Origin: Leucoraja erinacea
Taxonomy: Eukaryota
DNA length: 64,000 bases
Assembly (NCBI RefSeq): GCF_028641065.1
Contig: NC_073393.1
Location: 19,964,001-20,028,000, forward strand
Reading direction: 5' to 3'
Shown here in pieces: positions 179 to 52,482 of this stretch. The position numbers were made by a program, and so were the translations under genes. The stretch's first letter is position 1. Every line of letters begins with the position of its first letter. A model generated the notes under the pieces. It made no database searches. It was not told where the DNA came from and saw only the letters and a program-made list of their open reading frames with translations.

Positions 179-484
179 CTGTCCCTTCTCCTCTGAAGAT
201 TGTATCTGTTCGATCTAGAAATGCTGCGACTGATTTCCTGAAAATGCAGTGCAGAACGGCTGCCTTTTACCCGAAAGAATTTAATCTCACCTGGCATACA
301 AATGGTTCCGTCATCCAATCTGGATTTCGGCATGAACAAAGATCAACGGCAGACGGATTGTATGAAGTTATCAGCTTTTTAGAGGAGAAACGGACAGTCA
401 AAGAAGGAACCGTTTACACATGTAAAATTATTCACCGTTCTATGCTAACTCCAGCAACTGCCAACTACACGGTTCCTCGTGCAG
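179..484 (+). CDS. Copy A C1-set Ig domain exon
   Basis: Acceptor ttacttag|CT, donor GCAG|gtaacg; C1 motifs MQC..AAFYPKEFNLTW, DGLYEVISFL, YTCKIIH. Confidence 0.9.
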
Positions 485-3400
485 GTAACGTGTTCCACGG
501 ATAGTATAATGGATAGTCCACTGAATAATAATATTCATAGTAAAAATAAAATGTGAGGATTTTTAAAAGACCGAATTTTCTGCAGCAAATGTATTCACCT
601 AGAACTTGTGCAATTTTCCTATTTTCTGCCAACGTAGATGGACGCTGTACAGTCCATCCAGCCTATGTTGCTTCCCAGAAAAAGTCCATCAATACCCTTC
701 CCGCAATCGATCGCGCACCTGTACCCTTTCACGTGATCTACAAGTCCACTCTGATGCCCCCACAAACATCACACCTTCCCGAGAAATAATGTAAAAATAA
801 TCAATTAACTCACCAAGCAGTTCCTTGGTAAAATATCAGAGAATGTGCAATGTACATGCAGACAGTTCCCGAAGCCAGGCCTGAGCTCGGATCACCACTA
901 ACTCGGTGAAGGTTTTCTTTTTGTTTGTTTATGGCTGAAATTGGTAACCAATTGCAACACAGACACAGAGTCTACCTAAAATTAATCTGCGCAAATACCG
1001 AAATATGAAGTACTCCTCCTCCAATTTGTCTGTGGCCTCACTCTGGTAACGCAGGATGCCCAGAACAAAAAGGTTAGTGTGCGAATGGGAAAGGGATTCT
1101 AAATAGTTAGCAACCCGGAAATCCAATAGGCCTCGGCAGGAGATAGCTCCAGCGTATTTGACGATGTATTCGAGACGGAGTTTTGAACAAGCACTGTACC
1201 ATGTAACCAACACCAATGTAGCCAGTAGCTGTGGCTGATGTGAGTGTCTAGCTGCACCTTTAACTTGGAGAAAGTGAGAGGAGTCAAAAGAGAAATTGTT
1301 GAGGGTGACGACAAATTCCTCTAGACACAGGGGATTGTCCGTAGAAAAAAATATCTTTGGTCTCTTTTCAAGGAAGAAACGGAGGCCATGATATTTTCGT
1401 GTTCCTAACCACTCTACACCTACTACAGATGTCGGAGGACATTGGGAGAAAGCAGGAGAATGGGGTTAGGAGAGAGAGATAGATCAGCCATGATTGAATT
1501 GCGGAGTGGACATGATGGGCCGAATTGCCTAAATCTACTATTGCTTCTGACCTTAATACCCCTCCCCTGCCCTCCCATGCACAGCTCCTCCCAACCCCTC
1601 CTCTCTGAAGCCCTCTGGCCCCCACGCCCGAGCCTGCTTCTGCACCTCTGCTCGTCCCTGACCCCAGCCCTCATCCCTGTCGTGTTTTCACCACCCCCTG
1701 ACCTCCTTAACAATACAGAGCGGCCAGTCCTCGACAATTAGTGCTACATCCGACACCCGTGCAGAACTCAAATTCACCACTTATTTCCACCCTGCCCTCA
1801 AATTCACCTGGACGATGTCTGATACCGCTCTATGCTTCCCTTCTCTCTCTCCATTCACCCACCAGCCTCCGCAATCCTAAACATCAACTTCGGACATTTC
1901 CGTCGCCTCCAACCTGATCCCATTATTAATCACATATTTACCTTCCCGCCTTTTGCAGACTGTTCCTCCACAACTATGGTTCATTCATCCCTTTAAACCC
2001 AGACCACCCCAACCGGAGGTACTTTTCTCTACAACTGCAGGAGATGTAACACCTGTCCCCGTGCCTCCTTCCTCGTCTCTATGCACGGACTCCGACATTC
2101 TCTCCATGTTGGACAGTAGTTCACATGCACCTTCTCTAATCGCATCTACTGCATCCGATGGTCTGGATGCGGGGTCCTGTACAATAGTGTGAAAAGCTGT
2201 GGATTCTGCGACCATTTCGCTGAGCATGCTCAGACCTACTGGATCTCCCAGTAGCTAAGTATTTTAATTCCCCTTTTCATACCTATACTGACCTCTCTGT
2301 CCGAGGACCTGCCTTACACAGAGTGGCAAAAGCAAATTCGACGATTTCACTTGTCTAGCATACAAGCCAGCGGCATGAACGTTGAATTCTCTCATTTTAG
2401 CAATGTCCATAAGCACTCACCTCCCTCTCCTCTCCCTCGCTCCCCACCCCCCATTTGCCCCTTTTTCCTCTATGGGATTTACGTCCCACAATTTGCAACA
2501 ATGTATCCTTCTTGGGATAACGTCGGCCTATCAGGGAACCTCCCTGCGTGGGGCCATATAGTGCTAGTCCCGATCCCTCGTGTTTTTTTTTTTTTGCTCC
2601 ACCCCCCCCCCCCCCCCCCCCCCCACCCCACTATCAGCCTGAAGAAGTGCCCCGACACAAAAAAAGTCTCCTCTCCATTTTCTCCAATTATGCTGCCTGA
2701 CCCGCAGAGTTACGCCAGCATTTTCAGTCCATCTATGAGCACTAACTTGTTGGCTGTTGCATTAATTGGGGACGGTTAGTGGGGAGAAGACGTCTATAAT
2801 GAGTCATCCTGGCCAGCGTCAGTGACATTAACATCTCCTTCGAGATTTGGTGAACAGAATATATCCAAATTAATGTATTATGTTCTACAATTTTCTGTTT
2901 CCTGACGGTCAATATCCTACAAGGTTCACTTAAGATCTATTTATTTCACTCGTAATCGCGCTATAAATCGATATTGTTGGCTTTTTCCGCATTCCAGGCG
3001 GTTCTGGTGAAATCCAATGAGTGAACATTTGAAATATCTTGCTATGTTTCCCGCAAAGTCTACTTTAAAATAACGTAATTAAATATAAACATTTGGTAAT
3101 CGGTTTAACTTCCCACAGCTGTCGAGGGTTTATCTGCTTCTCTAATCGCTGGAAGTATCGGTGGTGCAGTATTAATTTTACTGTTCATCGTTATCGTCGT
3201 GATAACAATTATATATAGAGGTATGTTTCTCAACCATTTTTTAACATTATCACCCCAGTATAATATTATAATATAATCGTATTAGTAATTAGACGATTCT
3301 CTTGATAATAGAGGAAATGAAACATTTACACGGGCAAAATTTTTGATTATAGTAAACAGCACCGACTTAACGAAGATATTCAATTTTGCATTTGACTAAT

Positions 3401-6265
3401 GTTTGATGATCACATATTTTGAATTTTTGTATTATTTCAACACATCACATAGCAGCCAGCATTTAATTGTACCTAATGGTCAAGATCTGAACATATGTGA
3501 ATTTTGTGATAAAAATGTGTTTCATTGGTTGAAAGATAGCGTAGAGAAACAGGCCTTTTAACCCATCGATTCCACGTCGGCCATCGATCATCCGTTCACA
3601 CTAGCTCTACGTTAACCTACTTTCGCATCCACTCAATACACAGTGGCGGCAATTTACAGAGGTCCATTAACCCGCAAATCCGCACATTCTTGGGATGTGG
3701 GAGTATACTGGAGCAACGGATGAAACCCACGTGGTCACCGGGAGAACGTGCCTCAAACTCCGTATTTACCTGCTGCGCCACTGTGTCGTTCAACATTTTG
3801 GAAAATGCGTGGCACAAACAACGTGGTTTAAGCCTTCATTCATTTGTAGTGAAGCCGAATAAAGTGAAACTCTATCGGGCAATTATCACATGATATTACG
3901 TTCTTGGCGTGCAAAAAAAAACACCATGTCGCACGGCCATTTATCACTATTTCATTTTTCCGAGCAGGTGCAAAGAAGCGTACAGTAAATACAAATCGGC
4001 CACAAAGTTGGGTAAGGCTAATTTAATATGTGACTATTCCATTTGTGAAAGACAGGATTGTGCCTTTGTTGAAACCAAGCCGTTTTAATGAGGACCACGT
4101 CTTATTCTGTTTGAACGTATTCCCAATCAGTGAAGTTCACAGTACCCCACACAATGGAGGACATAAAGAACAATACAAAATGCATTTACAGGAGTTCGCA
4201 TTGATTATAAATATCATATACATTGTTTACACCAGATGTAGTGAAAGGAATATTTTCATTGCATCTTACTGCTTCTTGTCCAGCCACAGGCGAGATTCCG
4301 GAGTACTGGAGAGTGGCCATGTTGTTTCTTTGCTTAAGAAGGGAAGTAGAGGGAATCCAAGGCTCAACCAGTTGTGTCTAAATATAGGTCGTTTAACCAC
4401 ACCTTAGTGGTTGGGAACCAATTGGAAATACTTCAAGAGAGGATCTACTGACATTGGGAAGAGAATGAACGAATTAGCGATAGCCAGCACAGCCTAACAC
4501 GTTTTACTGATGTAATTGAGTTTTCTGAACAGATGACAAAGGAGATCGATGAAGGCAGGGCAGTAGCTGCTGCAAACACGAATCTAAGGAAGCTTAGTTC
4601 CTTTAAAGATAAAGTTCCTCATGATAGGTTGATCCAAAATATCAAGATATCCAGGATCCACTGTAATTTGGTGATATTAATTCAGAACTGGCTTCTTCAG
4701 AGCGACAGAGGTTTGTCGAAGGAAGATCTGCCTGAAGGTCTGTGATCAGTGGAATTCCACAGGGACCTCTGTTATTTGTGATATATATAAATGACGTAGA
4801 CATAAATCTAGATGGGTTGTTGAGTAAATTTGCTGAACAACAGAACAGGGGGAGTTGCAGACAGCCAGGAGGGTTGTCGGAAGATACAGAGGGTTATTGA
4901 TCATCGACAGAAGTGGGTGGAGAAATGGCAGATGGAGCATGATGGAGTATAACCCGAGCTGTCTGAGCTGTTGCACTTTAGGATGGCGCATGTAAGGATA
5001 AACTCAAAATGCTAAAGTGAATTGATGTGCAGGGAGGTCATAGAGTCCAAGTTATAGCTCACTGAAGACTGCAGCACGAAGAGATAGGCTGGTAAAGATG
5101 GCGTATGATATTGTTGCCTTCATTGCTACGGCCGTGATTATAAAAATCAAGAAACCATGATACAGCTCTATAAGACTATGGTTAAGCCCCATTTGGAGTT
5201 TTCCGTGCGGTTCTGGTAGCCTCATAACAGAACGCATTTGGGGAGGGTGCAGAAGAGGTTTGCCAGATGCGCTTGGATTAGAGAGGCGCAAGTGACCGAA
5301 GGGGTTGTATAAACTTGGATAGATTTTTTTTCTGGCAATTCGGAGCTTGAGGGCAGAATTGATAGACTGAAGCATAGATAGGGTAGACCGGCAGAACCTT
5401 TTCCACATAATAGAAATGTCCAATGCTAGAGGGCATAGCTATAAGGTGTGTGGGAGAATGTTTGATGGAGGTATACGGGGTAAGTTCTTTACATAGCGAT
5501 TGTTGTTTGCCTGGAAGGCATTACCGGTTGTTGTGGTGGAGGCAGACACGACAGTGGCGTTTAAGAGGCATTTAGATGGACATCTGCAGAAGGAAAAAAG
5601 GGATATGGATCATGTACAGATAGATGAGATCGGTTTAACATGGCATCGTGTTCAGCACAAACATTTTGGGCTGAAGGGCGCGTTCAGATGCTGTCCTATG
5701 TTCCATATTATGTACTGTTATCATTTTTTGATGTGTTCAGTTGCGACTGTTTTCCCCACAGTCGATTGGACTCTGGAAATTGGTCTTCATGCAATAAGTC
5801 ATTCGAGACAAAACGTAAAATAATTGTCCCTCGTTTATTCTTGCCAGTGCATTCCACGAGAAGGCTTCATCTGTATTATAACTAATCCTAAAATGTTCAT
5901 GAATTTCCAGGAAGAAGGTGAGAACGTTAGCCGTAATCCGATGTACGCCCATTTGGATTTTGTCCGCTCCAAAGAATATGAGAAACCTGAAGAGCACGCG
6001 AATAGACCAGTGTATGCAAAGGTACAGTTCGTTTCACGCTTTTACTCTACACATCTGAGAATACAGATACGTGTTACTTGGAGAGATTTGTCGTTTTCTT
6101 GTCCAATTAACAATAGCAAACATTTGTGCACAGATCGCAATTATGGCTGCTGCTGATACCCAACTGGCGTACGCATCCTTGAACACGTCAAGCTCCAAAA
6201 ATAATTTGAAACGGCAACAAAAAGAAATAAGTGTAATATATAGCGGGGTGAAAAATAACAACTAA
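179..6265 (+). CDS. IgSF receptor copy A (5'-partial): C1-TM-cytoplasmic ITIM tail; SIRP-like/VJ-C1 inhibitory receptor
   Basis: Exons 179-484 (C1), 3119-3220 (TM), 3968-4011, 5911-6021, 6134-6265, all AG/GT bounded and in compatible phases (1,1,1,0,0). Tail contains PMYAHL, PVYAKI, LAYASL, VIYSGV. Leader and V exons lie upstream of the window. Confidence 0.85.
1560..2730 (+). mobile_element. Degenerate Penelope-like element remnants in intron 3 (paralogous copies ~20045-21240 and ~47400-48180)
   Basis: HPALKFTWTISDT-like RT remnant, GIY-YIG-region remnant resembling 57580-57906, decayed terminal-repeat sequence near 2630-2730. Boundaries approximate. Confidence 0.6.
3119..3220 (+). CDS. Copy A transmembrane exon
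   Basis: cccacag|CT...AGAG|gtatgt; AVEGLSASLIAGSIGGAVLILLFIVIVVITIIYR, uncharged hydrophobic helix. Confidence 0.85.
3526..3786 (-). mobile_element. tRNA-derived V-SINE (HE1-like) fragment in intron 4 (paralogous copies ~22035-22295 and ~48888-49150)
   Basis: Reverse strand carries the ctcccacatcccaaga core shared with the SINEs at 42.4 and 43.5 kb, plus a CR1-like 3' tail. Confidence 0.6.
3968..4011 (+). CDS. Copy A cytoplasmic exon 1
   Basis: gagcag|GT...TGG|gtaagg; GAKKRTVNTNRPQSW, basic juxtamembrane segment. Confidence 0.75.
4280..5720 (+). mobile_element. Old, heavily decayed CR1 LINE fragment in intron 5 (present in all three gene copies)
   Basis: RT remnants TKEIDEGRAV..DKVPHDRLI, SGIPQ..LLFVIYIND, VVEADT..AFKRHLD; many stops and frameshifts. 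Confidence 0.75.
5911..6021 (+). CDS. Copy A cytoplasmic exon 2 (Tyr motifs 1-2)
   Basis: ttccag|GAA...AAG|gtacag; EEGENVSRNPMYAHLDFVRSKEYEKPEEHANRPVYAK. Confidence 0.8.
6134..6265 (+). CDS. Copy A terminal cytoplasmic exon (two ITIMs)
   Basis: gtgcacag|ATC; IAIMAAADTQLAYASLNTSSSKNNLKRQQKEISVIYSGVKNNN*; LAYASL and VIYSGV fit (I/V/L/S)xYxx(L/V/I). Confidence 0.8.
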   Translation: MAIMAAADTQLAYASLNTSSSKNNLKRQQKEISVIYSGVKNNN

Positions 6266-16894: not shown

Positions 16895-16953
16895 CCTTCT
16901 ATTTCCTGACTCCATTTCCGCCTTCAGGCACTCAGCCAAGCCCTATATTAAAA
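16895..16953 (+). promoter_or_regulatory. Putative core promoter of copy B (ETS-like TTTCCT/TTTCCG, TATA-like TATATTAAAA at 16944-16953); conserved at ~45040-45097 in copy C
   Basis: Motifs 125-175 bp upstream of the ATG in both copies; no transcript evidence. Confidence 0.3.
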
Positions 16954-17075
16954 GCAACGCATTTCTCGACCATGTCATGGGGTGGCCGATGTGATGAGGA
17001 GTCAGTGTAGAATATACCGTGACGATTATTAACCAGACCTTCATCTTTCCCAGCCAGGCGTGCTTAGTAGTCGAT

Positions 17076-17130
17076 ATGTTTCTGAAAGTGTCACTTTGGA
17101 CGATGTATTTCCTTGGAATTGTGAATGCGG
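17076..17130 (+). CDS. Copy B signal-peptide exon
   Basis: MFLKVSLWTMYFLGIVNA, donor GCGG|gtaaac, phase 1. Confidence 0.75.
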
Positions 17131-20100
17131 GTAAACTAGGGCTTCTATTGTTTTTTATTTATGTGTCTTCAAATTAGGCAGATATGATGTTGTGCCTTAT
17201 AATGTCATGCCGAATTGTCCATAAAGTCATTGCTGTCGTATGAGTTCTGGGAAGGAGGGTAATTTACGAAACCTTTACGAGGACACAAAAAGCGGGCATG
17301 ATTATTATCTGGGCTTCCATTGTAAATATTTGGGCTGAGTGCAATAAGATTTTTGCCTGCAGTGTTACATTTCCATTGCTGTATATCAATGACTAAACTG
17401 GATTTGCACCATCTATTGACAGCTGCTGAGAACAGGTCGGGCAAGACGATATCGAATGTTGTTCAGAATACGTTGATCAGTGGCATAAACTTTACCTGTC
17501 GGTGTTCCTTCCCCTTCAATGTAAATCTGTCAATCCTGGAGGTTTTCTGGTGGAAAGGTGGAAATAAAGACTTCCTGAAAGAAGATAGCAGGAAAATCTT
17601 CACTATACGGGCAGGAGCCCCCTACCTGCACCTGCTGAATGTCACGGTCTCGGACGCCGGAACATACCATTGTCTTGCAAAACAAGCGGGCCGACCGGTT
17701 GGGACGGGAACAGGAGAGCAACTGATCGTATATGGTGAGTGAGCGGTACTTTAGTTGCTAGACAAAAGTGCTGGAGAAACTCAGCAGGTGCAGCAGCATC
17801 TATGGAGCGAAGGAAATAGGCAACGTTTCGGCCCGAAACGTTGCCTATTTCCTTCGCTCCATTGATGTTGCTGCACCCGCTGAGTTTCTCCAGCACTTTT
17901 GTATACCGTCGATTTTCCAGGATCTGCAGTTCCTTCTTAGGTACTTTAGTTGCAGCTCGAATTTGAATTTTGCTTCTCAGAAGTCTTTAATCCAGAATAC
18001 AAATGTGAATAACGTTGGAAAATTATTCGAGATTGGTTCGTTTGAAAATATAGGTCAGAGGGCATGACAGCAATTATATTTGAGTTGATGTATATTGAAG
18101 GTAGTGAGTGTAAGTTGAACAAATACAACGGTTTCAATTTGACACCGAACGCCGAGGCGGGATCCTACTGATGTTTTCCTAATGATAATGTTATCAACAT
18201 ATAATGCTGTGTATTGAAAGAGCGAGGTTTTTACTTCCACAAAATTATTGAAATATAAATTATATTTCTTGCGCCGAATTAGAAAAACAATAAATGTTAG
18301 TCAAAGCATTCTCTGTAAGACAGTCCAAGTCTGCAACTGTTTATGACTGCTTATATTGGGGAGTTGAAGTATTCACAACAGTACTGTGCCTTTGAAGAGT
18401 TCAAACTTGAAAGTTGATTCGCGCATGTTAGCACAAGAAACAAGTATGCAAATTAGTGCTTTTTTCTTACATTAAATGTCAAGGGAATGCGTCGGGGGGG
18501 GGGGGGGGGGGGGGGAGTCCATTGCGATGAATTACACCTTCATCTGGCTCCCGATTTTAAAATGATGATGGAATTAAGTAACGTTGGAATAAATGCGATT
18601 AGATGATGTAATCGACTCTTCCCCTTTCTTTTAATTCTATTCCTCTTTACCTAGCTGTCCCTTCTCCTCTGAAGATTGTATCTGTTCGATCTAGAAATGC
18701 TGCGACTGATTTCCTGAAAATGCAGTGCAGAACAGCTGCCTTTTACCCGAAAGAATTTAATCTCACCTGGCATAGAAATGGTTCCGTCATCCAATCTGGA
18801 TTTCGGCATGAACAAAGATCAACGGCAGACGGGTTGTATGAAGTTATCAGCTTTTTAGAGGAGAAACGGCCAGTCAAAGAAGGAACCGTTTACACATGTA
18901 AAATTATTCACCGTTCTATGCTAACTCCAGCAACTGCCAACTACACGGTTCCTCGTGCAGGTAACGTGTTCCACGGATAGTATAATGGATAGTCCACTGA
19001 ATAATAATATTCATAGTAAAAATAAAATGTGAGGATTTTTAAAAGACCGAATTTTCTGCAGCAAATGTATTCACCTAGAACTTGTGCAATTTTCCTATTT
19101 TCTGCCAACGTAGATGGACGCTGTACAGTCCATCCAGCCTATGTTGCTTCCCAGAAAAAGTCCATCAATACCCTTCCCGCAATCGATCGCGCACCTGTAA
19201 CCTATTCCCTTTCACGTGATCTACAAGTCCACTCTGATGCCCCCACAAACATCACACCTTCCCGAGAAATAATGTAAAAATAATCAATTAACTCACCAAG
19301 CAGTTCCTTGGTAAAATATCAGAGAATGTGGAATGTACATGCAGACAGTTCCCGAAGCCAGGCCTGAGCTCCGATCACCACTAACTCGGTGAAGGTTTTC
19401 TTTTTGTTTGTTTATGGCTGAAATTGGTAACCAATTGCAACACAGACACAGAGTCTACCTAAAATTAATCTGCGCAAATACCGAAATAAGAAGTACTCCT
19501 CCTCCAATTTGTCTGTGGCCTCACTCTGGTAACGCAGGATGCCCAGAACAAAAAGGTTAGTGTGCGAATGGGAAAGGGATTCTAAATAGTTAGCAAGGGC
19601 GAAATCCAATAGGCCTCGGCAGGAAGTAGCTCCAGCGTATTTGACGATGTATTCGAGACGGAGTTTTGAACAAGCACTGTACCATGTAACCAACACAAAT
19701 GTAGCCAGTAGCTGTGGCTGATGTGAGTGTCTAGCTGCACCTTTAACTTGGAGAAAGTGAGAGGAGTCAAAAGAGAAATTGTTGAGGGTGACGATAAATT
19801 CCTCTAGACACAGGGGATTGTTCGTAGAAAAAAATATCTTTGGTCTCTTTTCAAGGAAGAAACGGAGGCCATGATATTTTCGTGTTCCTAACCACTCTAC
19901 ACCTACTACAGATGTCGGAGGACATTGGGAGAAAGCAGGAGAATGGGGTTAGGAGGGAGAGATAGATCAGCCATGATTGAATTGCGGAGTGGACATGATG
20001 GGCCGAATTGCCTAAATCTACTATTGCTTATGACCTTAATACCCCTCCCCTGCCCTCCCATGCACAGCTCCTCCCAACCCCTCCTCTCTGAAGCCCACTG

Positions 20101-39490: not shown

Positions 39491-41907
39491 TTTCTTTCCA
39501 CTTCCAAACAAAAATGTGGTTGGATTATTCAGCGTATGATCAACCTCGGTGAGACCAAGCGCAGGCTTGGCGTGCGCTTCGCACAACACCTCCGCCCAGT
39601 TCGACGTTGAGAACAGTTAAAACTCACTTTGTTGCATCCAGTCATCATTACAATTTGAAGAATAGCCGTGCAGCCAATATGAGCTCGTAATCGAATTAGT
39701 TGTGAATCTTTCAACTAAATACCTCATAGCATTAACCACACGACGTTCGTCAACCTGGAACATGAATTTGAAGATAAATATAAACAACGCAGTTTTTGCT
39801 TTACATTTACTAACTATAATATAATCTTTCTGTTAATCTGTGAGCATGTGGCCCTTTTAACATCTTAAATATAAGCCTTCGTAAAATAAGGAAAAATGTA
39901 CTCGGGAGGTCCGCTTCCGTTCATGCAAGGTCTCGTAATTTGATTATATACAGCCGGTAATGAAGACCTGTTAGTTTAATCGTTTCAGACGGAGTATAGA
40001 CATAAGGACATTTGATTGAGTGAATGATTACGCTCTCTACATTATTTTACTATCGTGCTGTCTAATTATTGCTTGACCTGTTCCGGATTGAGCCACGCAT
40101 TTAGTTTCCATTCTTCAAAGTCCCTGCAAGTAAGCGCGTAATTGTTCTGTGATTGCACATGAAGGAGATCATTCTAGCAGATGCAGAGCCACATGATTGA
40201 CGCATTCTTTCCTTTCTGATCAGAAAATTCATTGTCGATTTCTTTCAACTCATTTCAACTTTAGACGTGTTTCCTCTGCGGATTTTGCATGCAGGTACAG
40301 CTTTTTTTTTTACAAAACATAGTTTCATTTTGTGTTCAAGAGTAGCTCACCCCAATTACTAGTATATTTTAGGTGACATTGAAAGCGAACCACATTAATG
40401 GGTTGGAATTACGTTGCCTCGATTGGGGCAAGGTTATCCTATAAAGGGCTTAATTGAGCCACACGAGATTTCAAGAACAACCTCGCAATTTAATTATCAT
40501 TATGACTAAATTCTTAATTTTAAACAAAATATAATTTCCATAGCGAAATTTGAACCTAGCCCTTACTAGATGATGAGCTGAATAAGAATGCGCCTTCACT
40601 TTACCTCCCGATTTGTTTTGTTTATTCTCTGATACCTTCAACACCGAGTCCGTGATTAAGTTCATTATCGAGAAGAAACACAGACATCTTCATCGCTAAA
40701 TAAGATCTTGCGCCTAAGGTGCACATCGTCAGTAGTAGTACGGTGAGAATCAATACAGGGTCCACCAGGGAAACGAGGAGGATAATAAATATGTTACTTC
40801 GCCTTATTGAAATAATTATACATTGTTGAATTCAGGGCTGTGGAGTCGGAGTGGGAGTCATCGAGTCGGAGTCGGAGCAATTTTGATGCGGCTGGAGTCG
40901 GAGTCGGTAACAAAGTTCCGATTCCGACCTCCACATAAATTTCAGAGACTACGTAAATTGGAAAAAAAGAATCCCACTTTTTAAACATGCCGCACACTTT
41001 ATTTCCACCCGAGAGAACGAGAAATCACATCGGTGCAGCCATCTGGCGGCAGAACGACCACAAACAAAACGTAAACAAACACCATCACCAGCTGATTTAT
41101 CTCCACCTGCTACTGAGTGAACATGTCTGGATAATTTCTGAATTCAAAAGGTAAATGTAGTCATTCATTTATGGGGAAATATATTATAAATGAATACAGA
41201 TTACGAATTTTCATGATTTACTGCAAAAGAAATCGTCAGTGATGATTAATTCCGCCTCAACAGCACTAAACACAGGGGGGGGGGGGGGGGGCGTCCCTTT
41301 GACCGCCCTAATCCATTAAAACAAGTTTCCTTAAATTATTTAATTATTACCTATGAATAGAGACTAGTAGTCACTCACTTTAGTAGAGTTAGTAAAGGTA
41401 AGTAAAGTGTGCTCGTTCTTCCGCCGGTATTTACTGTACTCTAACCTCGTATTTTGAGATGTATATAAGATGTTAATAATTCAATTTCAGGACTGAATAA
41501 ATCACTAATGTCATTAATTATTTTCTTTTTCAGGAAAAACATTTGAGTTAATTCAAAATTACCCAAGTTAGCAAGTTTGAAATCTAAAGCCCCTTTCACA
41601 ATGGCAAAGAAAACTCCAACAAGATTCTGCTTTTTTTGATTATTGTACAATAACTACAGATGAAAAACGGTTTGTGTGTCAGTGTATGATAGAGATGATG
41701 ATGATGATGATGATGATGATGAAAAATTGTGTGAAACAAAACTCATTGTTTGTCTTGCTTTTATAACAATTGTAAATGAGAAAGATACAAGAACCGATAA
41801 AAATCTTACATTAAATGTCAGCAAAAACAACTTGAATCCGAAACTTTTTGTTGCTCGTGTTGATAAAACACGAGAAGTTTGGTTTAATGATGTAATTTAT
41901 GTTGCCC

Positions 41908-42202
41908 ATTACTCTGGACCTATGGGGGAAAGCGACATCCGATGCTGCTCAGAAGACGCAGCTCAACAAAATGAACGTTACACGCCAATTTCCATTCCTC
42001 TTCGATCTTAATCAACCCAACGTAACGGTGCACTGGCAAAAAGACGGAAATAAGAACTTCCTGAGAAGAGATAGCAGAACATTACGGGTAGGGGGCGCAA
42101 CCGTTGTAGCTGAATGTGAACATGAACAATGTACTTCCACATTCCACAAACTTGCGGGTTAAACGGTTTTAAATGAAACCAGTCAAGAACCTATCATATA
42201 AT
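41908..42202 (+). pseudogene. Divergent relic V exon of the same receptor family
   Basis: GKATSDAAQKTQLNKMNVTRQFPFLFDLNQPNVTVHWQKDGNKNFLRRDSR aligns to the copy B/C V domain. Ends ATC ATA TAA T|gtgag versus ATC GTA TAT G|gtgag. B-strand Cys lost, deletions, two stops. Confidence 0.75.
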
Positions 42203-42404
42203 GTGAGGGGCGATTGAATTTCAAATGTGAAGCACACGGGTGTTGCTGAAGGATTAACATGGTTTTCATGCAAAAAGACGTCCATAAAAATGACTTTTTT
42301 AATGGATTGGAACCATATTTGATGAGAACAGACCCAGCATGTATGCGGGATTTCCAAAGTCTAATCGGTATATCTAAAGCGCAGCAGTGCAATAAGATTC
42401 AAGT

Positions 42405-42690
42405 GTGGCAAGGTGGCGTTGCGGTATAGTTGCTGCCTTACAACGCCAGAATCCCGGGTTCGATCCTGAATACGGGTGCTGTCTATACGGACTTTATACG
42501 TTCTCCCCGTAACCGCGTCAGTATCCTCCGAAATCTTCGGTTCCCTCCCACACTCCAAAGACGTACAAAATAAGGTTAATTGGCTTGGTATTAATGTAAA
42601 CTTGTCCCTAATATGTGTAGGGTGGTGTTATGGTGTGGTGGTCGCTAGTCGGTGCGGGCTCGGTGGGCCGAACGACCCGTTTCTCTTATT
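42405..42690 (+). mobile_element. tRNA-derived V-SINE (HE1-like)
   Basis: A box GGTGGCGTTGCGG, B box GGTTCGATCC, V-domain core CCTCCCACACTCCAAAGACGTAC, CR1-like 3' end. Confidence 0.8.
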
Positions 42691-42994
42691 TAAAATTCCG
42701 AATTATTAATCAGAATTTAACTTTCCTTGTCGGACTTCAATCTTCGCACAAGTTTGCGGGTCTCCATGTTACTATCCAGCGATTAAACATTGTGCCTCCA
42801 TCCTGACACAGATTACATCAAACGTGGCAAGGACTATACGACCGATGTTATTTGATTGGATCTTTATGAAGGATAATAAAATAAATACCTCGGAGACTAA
42901 TATATTTTGAATGTAAACAACATGCGTTAGCATGAATAGTCAATTTGTACATATTATTCACCTAACTGATATTTTTTTTAACTGTCCAACTATA

Positions 42995-43210
42995 GGTAGA
43001 CGCAAAACGCTGGAGTAACTCAGCGGGAGAGGCAGCATCTCTGGAGCGAAAGAATGGGTGACGTTTCGGGCCGAGACCCTTCTTCAGACTTTCTTCGACC
43101 CGAAACGTCACCCATTCCTTCGCTCCAGAGATGTTGCCTGCCCGCCTGAGTTACTCTAGCATGTTGTGTCTACTTTCGATTTAAACCAGCACCTGCAGTT
43201 TTTCCTGCAC
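42995..43210. mobile_element. Inverted Penelope-like terminal repeats containing a minimal hammerhead ribozyme motif
   Basis: Palindromic arms; minus strand 43056-43090 reads AGT CTGAAGA AGGGTCTCGGCCC GAAA C GTC ACCC. Confidence 0.7.
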
Positions 43211-43532
43211 GTTATGTTCAGCTATATATATATACGGCCTGCTCATAATACCTGTAATTCAGACATCTTAGTTAGAACGATGGAAATTACGAGGACGAAA
43301 TCGGTCTCAGTAATCGATTCAAATCTTCAAGATCGACTCATTCGATTTAGTGGGAAAATATTATCGCTGTTTCAACAGAATGCCATGGAGTCGCAGACTT
43401 CGTCGTTTGCTGTCCCGGCAGCGTTGACAAAATAGCACGATTTATCCAGTAGCTCTTTGGCATTGTCTTCGTATGTGGACTGCCAACAGGATTATGTCGA
43501 CTTCCAACAAGTTTAGGGCGACACAGACTATG

Positions 43533-43788
43533 CGCTGCCTCACAGCGCCAGGGACTTGATCTTGACGACGAGTGATGTCTGCATGTTCTGATTGTGATCG
43601 TTGGGTTTTCCCGGCTGTTCCGTTTTCGTCCCACATCCCAAAAGGCTTGCAGGTTTAAAGGTTAATTGACCTCTGTAAATTCTCCCTGGTGTGTAGAAGA
43701 GAAGCAATATACAGATGATCGTTGGTCGGCCGGACTCGGCGGCCCGAAGGTCTGTTTCCGCGCTTTATCTTAGCTAATCTAAACTAAG
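43533..43788 (+). mobile_element. Degenerate V-SINE
   Basis: gctgcctcacagcgccaggga head, cccacatcccaaa core, CR1-like tail. Confidence 0.65.
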
Positions 43789-45220
43789 ATCAGAGAGGTA
43801 AAATAATATAACGAGAACAGGTCGCCTGTGCGTAATGCAATAAATAACATTGAAGCAGAGAGCAAGATATTCTTCACATTGATAACAAGGAAGAGAGTAA
43901 CTAAATTAAACATTTTGCCGCAAAACGAATGTGTGTATTATATTATTCATGGGAGAAAAATGTGTCAAGGATTATAAATAATTGCTTAGTATCTGGTTTT
44001 CACGGTAGAGGAAACTGGGAACATCGAACAATAATAACTAAGTAGAAGCCATGGCGATAGAAGAACGTTCTCGGTGATTTAACTACGAACCTGTGAGGTG
44101 ACTGGAGATGTGTCGGGTTCTATTTTGTACTGAAATAAAAATCCATGGATGTTGAATAGATCTGGGAAAACTGTAAATGTCATGACAGTGTAAAGACAAG
44201 AGGGGCACGAATAGGAGGAAACTATTGGCAAGGTATTCTGTCAACTGCTGTTGGGAAAGTGTTCAAATCCATTACTGATTAAAGTGTAATCAGTTGATGA
44301 AACTATGTCTATCAAGAGTCCGTGGGTTTATGAAAAACACACATATTTTGATACATCTTCTAGCACCATTTCACGATGGAGGGAGCAATGTGAATAAAAG
44401 GGAACTGCGAATCTGGATATGGATATCCTGAAGCACTTTATAGTATTCCCTATAAAAGATATCTGATCAAGATAGGAACACGCGAACGTGTTATGGATAT
44501 AATTTATAAGGAAATGGATGCTATGGTGGTTAATTATCTGAAAAGGGCAATGGGATGAATGGATGATTGCTAGATTGACTAACAGTGAATGGCGGAATGC
44601 CACAGCATTCGCCACAGCAAGGTACTCAGGCATAACTAATTAAATCTACAGTTATGTCGTGATGGACTACATAAAACAAGAGGTGATCATATTGAAACAT
44701 ATAAATCCTCCGGGTTGTGGGCGGTCGGGTTGATTTCCGGAACGTACTTTTTAGTTAGGGTTTCTAGAACGAAATTTAAGGAAACCAAAGGGTGGAACAC
44801 ATGCTAAACAGAAAAGAGAAAGATTTGGGCGGGCGTTATTGAATGTATACAAGGCGAAATCTGAGCACATAAATGAGTTTTGAGGGTCGTTAAAGGGGAA
44901 AAGAACAGAAAAGCAGCGTTTGAAACAAAGATTGGTTCATTCATGGCCTATCAATTTCTCGAGGGAGCAATTTTCTTATTTGGCGAAAATCGAGAAATGA
45001 TCGATGTGCACACTGTTTGGTGCCCTCAAATAAAACAGCCTTCTATTTCCTGACTCCATTTCCGCTTTCAGGCACTCAGCCAAGCCCTATATTAAAAGCA
45101 ACACATTTCCCGGCCATGTCTTGGGGGTGACCGATGTGACGAGGAGTCAGTGTAGAAGATACTGTGACGATTATTAACCAGACTTTCATCTTTCACAGCC
45201 AGGCGTGCTTCGTCGTCGAT

Positions 45221-45275
45221 ATGTTTCTGAAAGTGTCACCTTGGACGATGTATTTCCTTGGAATTTTTAATGCGG
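45221..45275 (+). CDS. Copy C signal-peptide exon
   Basis: MFLKVSPWTMYFLGIFNA, donor GCGG|gtaaat. Confidence 0.7.
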
Positions 45276-46426
45276 GTAAATTAGGGCTTCTATTGTTTTT
45301 TTATTTATGGGTCTTTAAATTACGCAGATATGATAGTTGTACCTTATAATGTCATGCCGAATTGTCCATTATGTCTTTGCTGTTGTGTGAGTTCTGGAAA
45401 GGAGTGTAATTTACGAAACCTTTACGAGGACACAAAAAGCGGGCATAATAATTCGGTTCAATTCATTGTACGTTTTTGGGCTGAGTGCAATAAGATTTTT
45501 GCCTGCAGTGTTACATTTCCACTGCTGTATATCAATGACTAAACTGGATTGTGCACCATCTATTGACAGCTGCTGAGAACAGGTCGGGCAAGACGATATC
45601 GAATGTTGTTCAGAATACGGTGATCAGTGGCATAAATTTTACCTGTCGGTGTCCCTTCCCCTTCAATGTAAATCTGTCAAACCTGGAGGTTTTCTGGTGG
45701 AAAGATGGAAATAAAGGTTTCCTGAAAGAAGGTAGCAGGAAAGTCTTCACTATACGGACAGGAGGCGCCTACCTTCACCTGCTAAATGTCACGGTCTCGG
45801 ACGCCGGAACATACTATTGTCTTGCAAAACAAGCGGGCCGACCGGTTTGGAAGGAAACAAGAGAGCAACTGATCGTATATGGTGAGCGAACGGTACTTTA
45901 GTTGCAGCTCGAATTTCGGTTTGCTTCACAAAAGTCTTTAATCCAGAATACAAATGTGCAAAACGGTGGGACATTATTCTGGATTGATTCGTTTGAAAAT
46001 ATAGTTCAGAGGGCATGACAGGGATGATATTTGAGTTGATGTATATTGAAGGTAGTGAGTGGAAGATGAATAAATACAACGTTTCAATTGGACACTGAAT
46101 GCCGAGGCGGGGATCCTCCAGATGTTTTCCTAATGATGTTATCAACATATAATCCTGTGAATTGAAAGAGCGAGGTTTTTACTTCCACAAAATAATTGAA
46201 ATATAAATTATATTTCTTGCGCCGAATTAGAGAAACAATGAATGTTAGTGAAAGCATCAAAGCATTCTCTGTAAGCCAGTCAAAGTCTGCAACTGTTTAT
46301 GTGTCACAGTACTGTGCCTTTAAAGAGTTGAAACTTGAAAGTTGATTCGCGCATGTTAGCACAAGAAACAAGTGTGCAAATTAGTGCTTTTTTCTTAAAT
46401 TAAATGTCAAGGGAATGCATGTCAAG

Positions 46427-46484
<58 letters not shown>

Positions 46485-49400
46485 CAATCGCGATGAATTA
46501 CACCTTCATCTGGCTCCCGATTTAAAAATTAGGATGGAGTTAAGTAGCGTTGGAACAAATGCCATTGGATGATGTAATCGACTTTTCCCCTTTTCATTCT
46601 ATTCCTCTTTACCTAGCTGTCCCTTCTCCTCTGAAGATTGTATCCGTTCGATCTAGAAATACTGCGACTCATTTCCTGAAAATGCAGTGCAGAACGGCTG
46701 CCTTTTACCCGAAAGAATTTAATCTCACCTGGCATAGAAATGGTTCCGTCATCCAATCTGGATTTCGGCATGAACAAAGTTCAACGGCAGACGGATTGTA
46801 TGAAGTTATCAGCTTTTTAGAGGAGAAACGGGCAGTCAAAGAAGGAACCGTTTACACATGTAAAATTATTCACCGTTCTATGCTAACTCCAGCAACTGCC
46901 AACTACACGGTTCCTCATGAAGGTAAAGTGTTGCACGGATAGCAGGAAGTAGCCCCAGCGTAGTGGTCGATGTATTCGAGAACGAGTTCGGGGGTAACGC
47001 CAGCGGGTTCTATTTTGTACTGAAATAAAACTCCACTGCACAATGTAACAAACAAATTGGTAGCCAGTAGCTGTGACTGATGTGACTGTCCAGCTGCAAC
47101 TTTAACTTGGAGAAAGTGAGAGGAGTCAAAAGAGAAGTTGTTGAGGGTGACGACAAATTCCTCTAGGCACAGGAGATTGTTCATAGAGAAAAATATATTT
47201 GGTCTCGTTTCAAGGAAGAAACAGAGGCCATGAGATTGTCGTGCTCCTAACCACTCTACTCCTACTACAGATGTCAGACGTCATGGGGAGAAGGCAAGAG
47301 AATGGGGTTAGGAGGGCGAGATAGATCAGCCATGATTTAATGGTTCAGTGGACATGATCGGCCGAATTCCCATTTCTACTATTCCTTATGACCTTAATAC
47401 CGCTCCCCTGCCCGCCCATGCACAGCTCCTCCCAACCCCTCCTCTCTGAAGCCCTCTGTCTCCCACGCCCGCAGCCTGCTTCTGCACCTCTGCTCGTCCC
47501 TGCCTCCGGCCCTCACCTCTGTCGTGTTTTCACCACCCCCTGACCTCCTTTGCGATACAGAGCGGCCAGTCCTCGACAATAAATGCTACATCCTACACCC
47601 GTGCAGAACTCAAATTCCCACTTATTCCCACCCTGCCCTCAAATTTACCTGGACTATCTCTGATACCGCTCTATGCTTCCTTCCTCTCTCTCTCCATTCA
47701 CCCACCAGCCACCGCAATCCTAAACATCATCTTCGGACATTTCCGTCGCCCCCAACCTCATCCCATTATTAACCACATATGTACATTTCCATGCATTTCC
47801 GCTTTTTGCAGACTGTTCCTCCACACCTATGGTTCATTCATCCATTTAAACCCAGACCACCCCAGCCCGATGTACTTTTCTCTACAGCTGCAGGAGATGT
47901 AACACCTGTCCCTGTAGCTCCTTCCTCGCCTCTATGCACGAACTCCGACAGTCTCTCCAGGTTGGACAGTAGTTCACACGCACCTTCCCAGTAGCTAAAT
48001 ATTTTAATTGCCCTTTTCATTTCTACACTGACCTTTTTGTCCGAGGACCTGCCTTGCACAGAGTGGCGAAAGCAAATTCGACGAACAGCACCTCATATTT
48101 CACTTGTATAGAATACAAGCCAGCGGCATGAACGTTAAATTCACAAATTTTAGTAATGTTCATAAGCACTCACCTCCAGCGTCAGTAACATTAACATCTC
48201 CTTCGAGATTTGGTGAACAGAATATATCTAAATTAATGTATTATCGTCCACAATTTTCTGTTTAATAACCGTCAATATCCCACAAGGTTCACTTAAGATC
48301 TATTTATTTCACTCGTAATCGCGCCATATATTGAAATTGTTGGCTTTTGCCGCATTCCAGGCGGTTCTGGTGAAATCCAATGAGTGAACATTTGAAATAT
48401 CTTGATTTGTATTCCGCAAAGTCTACTTTGAAACAACTTAATAAAACATAAACATTTGTGTCATCGGTTTAACAGCTGTCGAGGGTTTATCTGCTCTAAT
48501 CGCTGGAAGTATCCGAGGTGCAGTATTCATTTTAATATTCATCGTTATCATCGTGATGGCACATATATATATAGGTATGTTTCTCAACCATTTTATAACA
48601 TTATCATCCCAGTATAATATTATAGTATTGGTAATTACACGATCTTGATAATAGAGAAAATGAAACATTTGCACGGGGAAAATTTATGATTATAGTATAA
48701 TAATTTATAGTAAACAGCACCGACTTAACGAAGATATTCAATTTTGCATGTGACTAATGTTTGATGATCACATATTTTGAATTCTATGTATTATTTCAAC
48801 ACATCATCACATAGCAGCCAGCATTTAATTGTACCTATTGGTCAAGATCTGAACATCTGTGAATTTTGTGATACAAATGTGTTTCATTGGTTGAAAGCTA
48901 GCGCAGAGCAACAGGCCTTCTAACCCATCGATTCCACGCCGGCCATCGATCATCCGTTCACACTAGCTCTACGTTAACCTACTTTCGCAGCCACTCAATA
49001 CACAGTGGCGGCAATTTACAGAGGTCAATTAACCCACAAATCCGCACATTCTTGGGATGTGGGAGTATACTGGAGCAAGGGATGAAACCCACGTGGTCAC
49101 AGGGAGAACGTGCCCCAAACTCCGCATTTACCTGCAACACCACTGTGTCGTCCAACATTTTGGAAAAAACGTGGCACAAACAACGTGGTTTAAGCCTTCA
49201 TTCATATGTAGTGAAGCCGTATATAGTGAAACTCTATCGTGCAATTATGACATGATATTACGTTTTTGGCGTGCAAAAAAAACCCACCATGTCGCACGGC
49301 CATTTATCACTATTTTATTTTTCCGACCAGGTGCAAAGAAGCGTACAGTAAATACAAATCGGACACAAAGTCGGGTAAGGCCAATTTAATATATGACTAT

Positions 49401-52196
49401 TCCACTTGTGAAGTAGAGACAGGATTGTGCCTTTGTTGAAACCAAGCCGTTTTAATAAGGACCACGTCTAACATAGAAACATAGAAAATAGGTGTAGGAG
49501 TAGGCCATTCGGCCCTTCGAGCCTGCACCACCATTCAATATGATCGTGGCTGATCATCCAACTCAGTATCTTGTACCTGCCCTCTCCCCATACCCGCTGA
49601 TTCATTTAGCCACAAGGGCCACATCTAACTCCCTCTTAAATATAGCCAATGAACTGGCCTCAACTACTTTCTGTGGCAGAGAATTCCACAGATTCACCAC
49701 ACTCTGTGCGAAAAAATAAATTCTCATCTCGGTCCTAAAAGACTTCCTCCTTATCCTTAAACTGTAACCCCTTGTTCTGGACTTCCCCAACATCGGGAAC
49801 AATCTTCGTGCATCCAGCCTGTCCAACCCTTTAAGAATGTTGTAAGTTTCTATAAGATTCCCCTCAATTTTCTAAATTCCAGCGAGTACAAACCAAGTCT
49901 ATCCAGTGTTTCTTCATAAGAATGTCCTGCCATCCCGGGAATCAGTCTGGTGAACCTTCTCTGTACTCCCTCTATGTCAAGAATGTATTTCCTCAGATTA
50001 GGAGACCAAAACTGTACGCAATACTCCAGGTGTGGTCTCACCAAGGCCCTGTACAACTGCAGTAGAACCTCCCTGCTCCTATACTCAAACCCTTTTGCTA
50101 TGAATGCTAACATACCATTCGCTTTCTTCATTGCCTGCTGCACCTGAATGCCTACTTTCAATGACTGGTGTACCATGACACACAGGTCTCGTTGCATCTC
50201 CCCTTTTCCTAATCGGCCACCATTCAGATAATAGTCTACTTTCCTGTTTTTGCCACCAAAGTGGATAACCTCACATGTATCCACATTATACTGCATCTAC
50301 CATGCATTTGCCCACTCACCCAACCTATCCAAGTTCTGTTTGAACGTATTCACAATCAGTGAAGTTCACAGTACACGACACGAAAGAGGACATAAAGAAC
50401 AATACAACATGCATTTCAGAAGTTCGCATTTATTATAAATATCAAATATATTGTTTACACCAGGTGTGGTGAAAGGAATATTTTCATTGCACCTTACTGT
50501 TCCTTGTCCGGCCACATGCGAGATTTCGGAATACTGGAGAGTGGCCATGTTGTTTCTTTTTTTAAGAAGGGAAGTGGAGGGAATCCAAGGCTCAACCAGT
50601 TGGATCTAAATATAGGTCGGTTGACCACACGTTAGTGGTTGGGAACCGATTGGAAAGACTTCTTCAAGAGAGGATCTACTGACATTGGGAAGAAAATGGA
50701 CGAATAGCGATAGCCAGCACGGTCTAACACGTTTTACTGATGTAATTGAGTTTTCTGAACAGATGACAAAGGAGATTGATGAGGGCAGGGCAGTAGCTGC
50801 TGCAAACACGAATCTAAGTAACTGGCTTTTGATAACGACCTTCATGATATATATTGAAACTTGGGGTTACAAAAGATCACCCTCAACATATGCAGGAACT
50901 ACTCCAGAATGATATGAATTTTGAACTGGATTCGTCATGCAGCCACAGTGGGCTACGAAGGAAGATCTGCCTGATGGTCTGTATCAGTGGCAATCCACAG
51001 GGACCTTATCGTTATTTTGATCCATATCAATTGACCTAACATAAATCCCGGATGGGTGGATTTCGTAAATTTGCCTGAACATCAGAACAGGAGGAGGGTT
51101 GGCGGAAGCTACAGAGGGTCAGATCATCGATAGAAGTGGGTGGAGAAATGGCAGATGGGGCATGATGGAGTATAATCCGAGCAGTCTGAGCTGTTGCACT
51201 TTAGGATGGCGCGTGTAAGGATAATGTCAAGATGCTAAAGTGAATTGATGTGCAGGGAGGTCATGGAGTCCAAGTTCATAGCTCACTGAAGGCAGCATGA
51301 AGAGGTAGGCTATTTAAGATGGCGAATGATATGTTTGCCTTAATTGCTAGTGGATTGAATATAGGAGTCAATAAATCATGATACAGCTCTATAAGACTAT
51401 AGTTAAGCCCCATTACACGATTTCCGTGCGGTTCTGGTAGCCGCATTACAGAAAGCCTATGGGGAGGGTGCAGAAGACCAGATGCGTTTGGATTAAAGAG
51501 GTGCAAGTGAACTAAGGGGTTGTATAAACTTGGATTGTTTTTACTGGAAATTCGGAGCATGAGGGCAGAATTAGTACAGTAAAAGGCGTAGATAGGGTAG
51601 ACCGTCAGAACCTTTCCCACAGAATTGAAATGTCCAATGCTAGAGGGCATAGCTATAAGGTGTGTGGGATAAAGTTTGATGGAGGTATACGGGCTAAGCA
51701 CATAGCGATTGTTGTTTGCCTGGAAGGCATTACCAGGTGTGGTAGTGGAGGCAGACACGATAGTGGCGTTTAAGAGGCATTTAGATGGACACATGCCCGT
51801 GAAAGAAAAAAAAGGCATATGGGTCATGTACAGATAGATGAGATCAGTTTAACATGGCATCGTGTTCAGCACAAACAGTTTGGGCTGAAGGGCGCGTCCC
51901 TATGCTGTACCGGTCTATATTCTATGTTATGTGCAGTTATCATTTTGATCTGTCCAGTTGCGACTGTTTGCCCCACAGTCGTTTAGACACTGGAAATTAG
52001 TCCATGCAATAAGTCATTCGAGACAAAACAAAAAATAATTGTCCCTCGTATATTCTTGACAACGCATTCCGAGCGAAAGCTTCATCTGTAGTATAACTAA
52101 TCTTAAAATAAGTTCATGAATTCCCAGGAAGAAGGTGAGAACGTTAACCGCAATCCGATCCACGCCCATTTGGATCTTGTCCGCTGCAAAGAATAA
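45221..52196 (+). CDS. IgSF receptor copy C: leader-V-C1-TM(Arg)-short Tyr-free tail, 294 aa; putative activating counterpart (alternatively a young pseudogene)
   Basis: Exons 45221-45275, 45570-45881, 46617-46922, 48476-48574, 49331-49374, 52128-52238 with TAA at 52194-52196. All splice sites intact and no frameshift. Confidence 0.75.
45570..45881 (+). CDS. Copy C V exon
   Basis: LNVTVSDAGTYYC retained; G strand VWKETREQLIVY. Confidence 0.88.
46617..46922 (+). CDS. Copy C C1 exon
   Basis: acctag|CT...GAAG|gtaaag; C1 motifs intact. Confidence 0.88.
48476..48574 (+). CDS. Copy C TM exon with arginine
   Basis: AVEGLSALIAGSIRGAVFILIFIVIIVMAHIYI; CGA at 48514-48516; 3-nt in-frame deletion relative to copies A/B. 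Confidence 0.8.
49331..49374 (+). CDS. Copy C cytoplasmic exon 1
   Basis: GAKKRTVNTNRTQSR, gaccag| and |gtaagg. Confidence 0.7.
49470..50333 (-). mobile_element. CR1 3' fragment inserted only in copy C intron 5
   Basis: ORF 49850-50296 is the RT C-terminus; ACATAGAA tail; empty site at ~4102 in copy A. Confidence 0.88.
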
Positions 52197-52238
52197 GGGA
52201 AACCTGAAGAGCACATGGAGAGTCCAGTGTATGCAAAG
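52128..52238 (+). CDS. Copy C cytoplasmic exon 2 with Tyr>His and premature stop
   Basis: EEGENVNRNPIHAHLDLVRCKE*; ATGTAC>ATCCAC and TAT>TAA relative to copies A/B. Confidence 0.75.
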
Positions 52239-52350
52239 GTAAAGTTGGTTTCACGCTTTCACTCAACACATCTGAGAACACAGATACGTCTTATTCGGAG
52301 AAATTTGTAATTTTCTTGTCCAATTAACAATAGGAAACATTTGTGCACAG

Positions 52351-52482
52351 ATCGCAATTATGGCTGCTGCTGATACCCAACTGGCGTACGCTTCCTTGAA
52401 CACGTCAAGTTCCAAAAAGAAATTGAAACGGCAACATAAAGAAATAAGTGTAATATATAGCGGGGTGAAAAATAACAACTAA
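52351..52482 (+). other. Copy C ITIM exon: intact reading frame but downstream of the stop (3' UTR unless exon 6 is skipped)
   Basis: IAIMAAADTQLAYASLNTSSSKKKLKRQHKEISVIYSGVKNNN*, acceptor intact. Confidence 0.7.

Follow-up and report, generated by a model that had tools for sequence, protein, structure and literature searches.

A tandem cluster of SIRP-like receptor genes in the skate Leucoraja erinacea and a candidate change from inhibitory to activating type in one copy

RESULTS

Gene content and common exon plan

The stretch of DNA analyzed here, referred to as the window, comprises 64,000 nucleotides of Leucoraja erinacea (RefSeq assembly GCF_028641065.1, contig NC_073393.1, positions 19,964,001 to 20,028,000, forward strand) and contains a cluster of three immunoglobulin (Ig)-type receptor genes, designated copies A, B, and C. 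By their sequence, A and B look like inhibitory-type receptors, and copy C carries an arginine in its transmembrane (TM) anchor together with a shortened, tyrosine-free tail. The window contains no N runs; it consists of vertebrate DNA rich in repeats, in which, apart from the repeats, only these receptor genes are present. Three tandem paralogous units, all on the plus strand, were resolved by self-BLAST: unit A (34 to ~6729), a partial copy cut by the window start inside the V-C1 intron; unit B (16060-28591), which is 97% identical to A over 5 kb; and unit C (39797-52487, resuming at 56245-57028), which is 82-94% identical to A and B.

Exons were mapped using tblastn guided by relatives from a library of 1.8 billion proteins, combined with a three-way scan for conserved phase-compatible exons. 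The searches, the fold prediction, and the trees described below were all run exon by exon, and no joined full-length protein of A, B, or C was used. The common plan consists of seven exons, namely, a leader of 55 nt, a V-like exon of 312 nt, a C1 exon of 306 nt, a stalk plus TM exon of 102 nt (99 nt in C), and the cytoplasmic exons cy1 (44 nt), cy2 (111 nt), and cy3 (132 nt including the stop). Each exon is flanked by AG and GT in all copies and the exon phases (1-1-1-1-0-0) are compatible, which confirms the three tandem paralogs on one exon plan reported in the first-pass annotation of this DNA. The features are listed in Table 1.

Table 1. Coordinates of the receptor exons and associated insertions in the window
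Feature	Position	Strand	Remarks
Copy A C1-set exon	179..484	+	Pfam C1-set match on the B and C equivalents; leader and V exons of A lie upstream of the window
Copy A stalk+TM exon	3119..3220	+	Uncharged TM LIAGSIGGAVLILLFIVIVVITIIY
Copy A cy1	3968..4011	+	44 nt, AKKRTVNTNRPQSW; matches GKRTSLNTSQ of P0013
Copy A cy2	5911..6021	+	111 nt, phase 0-0; tail module 1, MYAHL ... PVYAK
Copy A cy3 (last coding exon)	6134..6265	+	Tail module 2, LAYASL ... VIYSGV, stop
Copy B leader	17076..17130	+	MFLKVSLWTMYFLGIVNA; matches leaders of P0158 and P0159
Copy B V-like exon	17423..17734	+	3' end is the germline-joined J-like motif VGTGTGEQLIVY
Copy B C1-set exon	18655..18960	+	
Copy B TM exon	21624..21725	+	GGT (Gly) at 21665-21667
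Copy B cy1	22477..22520	+	
Copy B cy2	27767..27877	+	MYAHL ... PVYAK
Copy B cy3	27994..28125	+	LAYASL ... VIYSGV, stop
Copy C leader	45221..45275	+	Open, MFLKVSPWTMYFLGIFNA
Copy C V-like exon	45570..45881	+	Open; J-like motif now VWKETREQLIVY, four substitutions in 45848-45862
Copy C C1-set exon	46617..46922	+	94% amino acid identity to B
Copy C TM exon	48476..48574	+	CGA at 48514-48516; in-frame 3-bp deletion; 7-bp deletion 5' of acceptor
Copy C cy1	49331..49374	+	AKKRTVNTNRTQSR
Copy C cy2	52128..52238	+	ATC CAC (Ile-His) at 52158-52163; TAA at 52194-52196, 42 nt before donor
Copy C cy3	52351..52482	+	Frame still open, both canonical inhibitory motifs, downstream of TAA
Long interspersed nuclear element (LINE)	52489..56244	-	Endonuclease and reverse-transcriptase open reading frames (ORFs); 6 nt past copy C stop codon
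Copy-C-only insertion, 4.5 kb	40513..44983	.	~240 bp 5' of ATG; decayed V-exon relic at 41926-42093

V-like and C1 domains of the ectodomain

The C1 exon encodes a true C1-set domain (Pfam scores of 37.7-39.4 bits in B and C, cut-off 21), and its closest solved structures are Ig constant, major histocompatibility complex (MHC) alpha-3, SIRP-gamma, and SIRP-alpha domains. The N-terminal domain of copy B is a short Ig domain, scoring 25.5 bits with the Pfam 'ig' model (cut-off 21.8) and 22.7 bits with V-set, which is under the cut-off of 26. An AlphaFold model of the V-like domain, computed from a 23-row family alignment, reached a predicted local distance difference test score of 85.6, and its nearest folds were I-set, VNAR, PD-L1 V, and NKp44 domains. 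No second C1 domain was found by tblastn; in B and C, the V and TM exons are separated by only one C1 exon.

In copy B, the V exon continues without a break through GTGTGEQLIVY as far as the splice donor, so that the V and the J-like motif share one exon, which is followed by the C1-set domain. Non-rearranging VJ-like plus C1 is a fair description of this copy. The 'VJ' label of the first-pass annotation is therefore appropriate for B, but not for C, in which the corresponding motif is WKETREQLIVY and the glycines of GTGTGEQLIVY are gone. Over the V domain the amino acid identity of C to B is 85%. At conserved V sites copy B, not C, shows derived residues, with GGAYLHLL replaced by GAPYLHLL at 17616-17623 and YYC replaced by YHC before the second cysteine at 17665-17667; the supposedly intact inhibitory copy is thus also fast-evolving.

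Anchor and tail of the three copies

An uncharged TM and four tyrosine motifs had been assigned to A and B, and both features are present in both copies. The tail motifs are of the form Yxx[LV] (MYAHL, VYAKV, AYASL, and IYSGV) and fall into two modules, encoded by cy2 and cy3, with a tyrosine pair 23 residues apart in each. The assignment needs one refinement: canonical ITIMs (immunoreceptor tyrosine-based inhibitory motifs; [SIVL]xYxx[ILV]) are two of the four, the last two encoded by cy3, the cy2 motifs having proline at -2 and the first of them reading NPMY. The tails of A and B would recruit SHP-type phosphatases.

In copy C, the three changes on which the first-pass annotation was built were all found. 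A glycine codon of the TM exon is replaced by an arginine codon (GGT>CGA); in cy2, ATC CAC (Ile-His) stands where A and B have ATG TAC (Met-Tyr); and TAA replaces TAT further along the same exon, upstream of the last splice donor. The arginine is residue 7 of a 25-residue hydrophobic stretch, LIAGSIRGAVFILIFIVIIVMAHIY; it would flank the membrane instead of lying within it if the helix begins at GAV. The translated tail, G followed by AKKRTVNTNRTQSR and EEGENVNRNPIHAHLDLVRCKE, has 37 residues, in agreement with the length given earlier, and contains no tyrosine, no ITIM, and no immunoreceptor tyrosine-based switch motif. The leader-V-C1-TM frame had been described as open with its splice sites preserved, and indeed 12 of 12 splice sites are kept and no frameshift occurs. 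The silenced cy3 is also still readable, with an open frame that codes for both canonical ITIMs (LAYASL and VIYSGV). The exon lengths and phases of C allow in-frame skipping of cy2 (111 nt, phase 0-0) and of the TM exon (99 nt, phase 1-1).

Relatives in sharks and rays

The nearest proteins were all from sharks and rays (Pristis, Hemitrygon, Mobula, Heterodontus, Stegostoma, Heptranchias, Scyliorhinus, and Chiloscyllium), with 50-67% identity in V and C1. Their NCBI names are 'tyrosine-protein phosphatase non-receptor type substrate 1-like' (SIRP-alpha-like), 'signal-regulatory protein beta-1-like', 'NCR3LG1-like', and 'uncharacterized'. Protein searches with the horn-shark protein P0013 and the batoid protein P0158 returned no skate protein, and a search with the V exon of copy C gave no candidate under a length rule that hides full-length kin of a single exon. 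No description of this receptor family was found in a literature search.

The ITIM-bearing relatives share a common type-I TM, (L/V)IAGCAGGA..., and the short-tailed relatives mostly possess a separate dedicated TM with arginine, HLIYRS... in sharks and WIVRG... in rays. The kin of the skate genes include the horn-shark pair P0013/P0014, the zebra-shark pair P0152/P0156, and the batoid proteins P0158, P0159, and P0160; the batoid proteins have the same leader but, unlike copy C, carry the dedicated activating-type TM (WIVRG...) and not a converted inhibitory one. An automatic classing of TM and tail in 32 wider relatives was rejected as too noisy, as juxtamembrane lysines and arginines were counted.

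Relatives combining a TM arginine with a truncated tail, which the first-pass annotation suggested looking for, were found in horn shark (P0014) and zebra shark (P0156). Together with copy C, three type-I anchors thus carry arginine (AGSIRGAV in copy C, AGCARGAL in P0014, and ASCVARAI in P0156). In the TM alignment, the arginines of C and P0014 occupy one column and that of P0156 lies one column later; the family relatives keep glycine and tyrosine at the sites changed in C. The tail of P0014 has 17 residues and no tyrosine, and the cut tail of P0156 keeps one ITIM. The tails are cut at different places: that of P0014 following cy1, that of P0156 close to cy3, and that of copy C within cy2.

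Maximum-likelihood trees were built separately for the V-like exon and the C1 exon. In both trees, each arginine-bearing convert was placed with good support as sister to an ITIM-bearing protein from the same species; support values were 100/99 for B/C, 100/99 for A/B/C on the C1 tree, and 98/94 (V) and 100/99 (C1) for P0013/P0014; P0152 and P0156 are identical in V and were joined with 100/95 on the C1 tree. Since copy C is sister to B on the V tree and to A and B on the C1 tree, its changes are derived. The sister pairs within species and the three different tail cuts indicate three independent events at the same anchor spot, two of them in sharks. It is plausible from these alignments and trees that the Gly>Arg change with tail loss represents a recurrent route from inhibitory to activating type. 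This recurrence is the chief new argument for a selected conversion of C over chance damage.

Coding integrity of copy C

Between B and C, 10.7% of aligned intron sites differ, and 49 frameshifting indels occur in 5106 aligned bases. In the 1062-nt coding sequence no frameshift separates B from C, compared with 10.2 expected at the intron rate and about 5 for the C lineage alone (P ~0.006). The sole indel in the coding sequence of C is the in-frame 3-bp deletion, and the sole stop is the tail TAA. Conservation of the C1, cy1, and cy3 exons exceeds that of the introns two- to fourfold (proportion of nonsynonymous differences, 0.02-0.03 versus 0.107 for introns). With ray and shark outgroups, derived ectodomain changes in C versus B numbered 5 versus 8 in V and 2 versus 2 in C1; without an excess of such changes, C has drifted no faster than the apparently intact B.

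Under the 50-55-nt rule, stops close to the last exon junction normally escape nonsense-mediated decay. As the TAA lies 42 nt before the last junction, the transcript of copy C should escape it. Beyond this stop, cy3 of C has 4 differences in 132 nt, although it is located between flanks that are 12-15% diverged. If the C lineage alone were neutral, about 8.6 differences would be expected (estimated P ~0.07, not significant), and the conservation, although suggestive, would fit a stop of recent origin as well as an exon that is still in use.

Read mapping to copy C

Reads were mapped to positions 46500-52499 from three RNA runs with the same species label and from one DNA run, X4, with another organism label. 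Over cy2-cy3, X4 contigs differed from the window at 5/338 and 5/179 positions, which shows that independent data contain a C-type copy; the differences listed end before position 52194, and coverage of the TM exon was very sparse. The DNA contig with the other organism label stops fitting the window at 52489, and the LINE insertion at that position may be absent there. This LINE (52489-56244) contains endonuclease, reverse-transcriptase, and upstream ORFs in different frames.

In the RNA mapping, all reads fell on repeats; the intronic repeats of C (47100-47499 and 48900-50499) collected abundant reads on both strands in all three runs, presumably from other genomic copies. A joint that goes back 122 at 50090/49969 was crossed by about 200 reads in each of two runs and by 15 in the third, which points to a tandem or rearranged element elsewhere.

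DISCUSSION

Relation to known receptor families

In mammals, SIRP-alpha (SHPS-1) is inhibitory and SIRP-beta1 is activating through DAP12. Like SIRP, the skate genes have a V-like N-terminal domain ahead of a C1-set domain, with a J-like G strand in B whose glycines are lost in C, and there is a partner gene with a basic TM residue and a short tail. As in SIRP-alpha, the tail consists of two modules with two tyrosines each, ~23-24 residues apart; the rodent SIRP-alpha P0164 has ITYADL...EYASI and LTYADL...EYASV with a spacing of 24 residues. Unlike SIRP (V-C1-C1), they carry a single C1 domain, and their short V-like domain folds nearest to I-set and VNAR. The identity of mammalian SIRP-alpha to the family is ~30% over a third of the protein, and the basic residue of copy C is an arginine located in the outer third of the TM, that of SIRP-beta1 a lysine. 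We use SIRP-like as a working name that fits the sequence features, and with one C1 domain instead of two the family is not filed as a SIRP member.

Kinship with NKp30/B7-H6 was considered on account of the 'NCR3LG1-like' names and set aside, as the tail, the single C1, and the best names point to SIRP-like. The UrIg/UrIg2 receptors of cartilaginous fish (PMC12227049, PMC10751288) likewise have a V that does not rearrange and to which J is already joined, with a C1-set domain next, but they were rejected as the family concerned for their different architecture with more C domains; the term ITIM occurs nowhere in the text of the two papers, and 'paired' is absent from the MHC paper.

Copy C as a candidate activating-type receptor

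Mammalian paired receptors are well studied, and their activating members repeatedly arise from inhibitory ones. In activating KIR, Ly49, PIR-A, and LILRA, an ITIM gene was duplicated, a point change made one TM residue basic, and the ITIMs were removed by a frameshift or a premature stop, the old ITIM sequence remaining readable downstream and the event recurring within a family; in all these respects copy C is alike. Unlike the skate genes, those mammalian receptors have C2/I-set Ig or lectin domains, and expression and adaptor binding have been shown for them. The inhibitory-to-activating route itself is the textbook one of KIR, SIRP, and PIR, and the shark and ray family is already annotated as SIRP-alpha-like or SIRP-beta-like; what is new here is a recurrent switch site across elasmobranchs.

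Copy C is tentatively regarded as a working non-inhibitory, probably adaptor-coupled counterpart of A and B, a reading to which we give slightly less than an even chance on the comparisons above. It descends by duplication from the inhibitory type; its own lineage acquired the arginine, within the outer third of the TM, the tyrosine that comes first in the tail was lost, and a new stop removed the other three. If expressed, it would yield a near-identical ectodomain, a charged TM, and a signalling-dead tail; it would probably reach the surface with an adaptor that has an acidic TM residue and an ITAM (immunoreceptor tyrosine-based activation motif), and would signal in the opposite sense to A and B. 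The conversion first proposed for this gene is partly sustained, in that the changes are real, derived, free of frameshifts, and recurrent in sharks; other features of the locus qualify it and have to be set against them.

Evidence for a possibly dying gene

A serious possibility, though not the favored one, is that copy C is a young unprocessed pseudogene or a dying copy, in which constraint persisted for some time after the duplication, the tail stop, or a loss of expression caused by insertion, then released it, and the arginine, tyrosine, and J-motif changes are neutral. A number of observations weigh against a working copy C. For B versus C, the ratio of nonsynonymous to synonymous rates (dN/dS) equals 1.08; both the TM exon (8 nonsynonymous changes, 1 synonymous) and cy2 (11 and 2) change at approximately the intron rate. 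Three of the five C-derived V changes hit J-motif glycines (G93W, G95E, and G97R), of which G95 and G97 are family-conserved and G93 is variable; the changes lie in four substitutions within 13 bp, possibly a single event. The LINE past the stop breaks the 3' flank common to A and B, displacing by ~3.75 kb the nearest shared poly(A)-like signal, the ATTAAA that lies ~300 nt downstream in those copies, and the 4.5-kb insertion is located close upstream of the ATG. The 7-bp deletion next to the TM acceptor removes a CTTCCC run and hardly alters the total pyrimidine content. The C lineage accumulated ~30 substitutions, among which one stop would be expected by chance. Furthermore, a V-exon relic of an older family member at 41926-42093 (+), 3.1 kb upstream of the C leader in DNA without counterpart upstream of B, shares 41% identity with the V exon of copy B (E = 1.7e-9) and has lost both cysteines, with a 3-residue gap; members of the cluster thus do die.

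In the three RNA runs, the tissue labels of which are hidden, four exons of C (C1, TM, cy2, and cy3) had zero depth; cy1 shares its depth bin with a repeat. Reads from A or B would match the C1 exon, which is 3% different, at the 95% threshold, and this exon is equally empty. The whole trio is therefore silent in these runs, which say nothing on the expression of C, and the tissues were probably the wrong ones. The arginine, the stop, and the tyrosine loss were singled out after being seen, and gene death is common in such clusters. Three converts make a small sample, and the shark proteins come from automatic gene prediction. As to a possible adaptor, FcR-gamma was traced to an origin in bony fish by a survey published in 2014 (PMC4016189), and our search of the adaptor literature found nothing on sharks.

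Against decay stand the lack of frameshifts, the 12 kept splice sites, and the single stop, located where it trims the tail and should escape decay of the transcript, as well as the conservation of C1, cy1, and cy3 above the introns and an ectodomain that evolved no faster than that of B. For A versus B, both apparently intact, dN/dS is 1.33, so that a ratio near 1 is usual in this family and not specific to C. Pure decay would also require that an arginine in exactly the column of an independent shark convert, the loss of the first tyrosine, and a lone stop before the ITIMs came together by coincidence, which is unlikely. An arginine at the same or an adjacent TM column occurs with tail loss independently in two sharks.

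Further alternatives

Expression of copy C in a non-activating role, as a tail-less ligand decoy or by isoform switching through exon skipping, appears quite improbable. Without cy2, cy1 would be spliced in frame to cy3 and both canonical ITIMs would be regained, and skipping of the TM exon would give a soluble form; the few differences in cy3 behind the stop, the shortened pyrimidine run at the TM acceptor, and the zebra-shark P0156, with its TM arginine and one kept ITIM, are consistent with such a role. However, the cy3 conservation is not significant if the C lineage alone is neutral, and a TM arginine normally holds a receptor in the endoplasmic reticulum unless an adaptor is present. That CGA and/or TAA are assembly or consensus errors or rare alleles, and C an ordinary inhibitory gene, is very hard to credit, given that the substitutions lie in non-repetitive sequence, two of them in one codon, amid many other C-specific differences, and that the X4 contigs show a C-type copy.

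Implications

If copy C is the functional counterpart favored here, cartilaginous fish followed the same evolutionary route as mammals, caught while the silenced ITIM exon is still readable, and the gene bears on the age of adaptor-coupled signalling. From the cases in horn shark and zebra shark, the switch seems to favor a single TM position. A bolder reading, which we consider rather unlikely, is that the conserved Gly-Gly in the TM of inhibitory type (AGxxGGA) is a pre-set switch point, at which one Gly>Arg change and then any tail truncation would turn a SIRP-like brake into an adaptor-coupled trigger; this path would have been taken at least three times by sharks and skates, with copy C as an intermediate whose ITIM exon could be toggled by skipping the 111-nt exon. 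If so, the full paired-receptor logic, including coupling of the TM arginine to ITAM adaptors, would have been in place at the base of jawed vertebrates. If C is instead dying, the locus is an ordinary fast-turnover immune gene cluster. Either way, the family carries only borrowed database names and merits a proper description.

Other features of the window

A near full-length antisense LINE, 23818-26709 (-), is present in the cy1-cy2 intron of copy B alone, where it encodes a 358-amino-acid endonuclease ORF and a 573-amino-acid reverse-transcriptase ORF; the intron measures 5.2 kb, compared with 1.9 kb in A. GC-rich repeated segments occur between the gene copies (15193-15755, 28745-29444, and 33411-34253), one pair being inverted and 86% identical, and have G or C runs and, on both strands, long ORFs of poly-Gly, poly-Pro, and Arg-rich composition. 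Downstream of copy C, a weak match to the end of the last tail exon was detected at 58576-58644 (+) (KIIYAAAKNPN versus SVIYSGVKNNN, E ~0.05-0.6), which could be a relic of a further family member 3' of C or a chance similarity.

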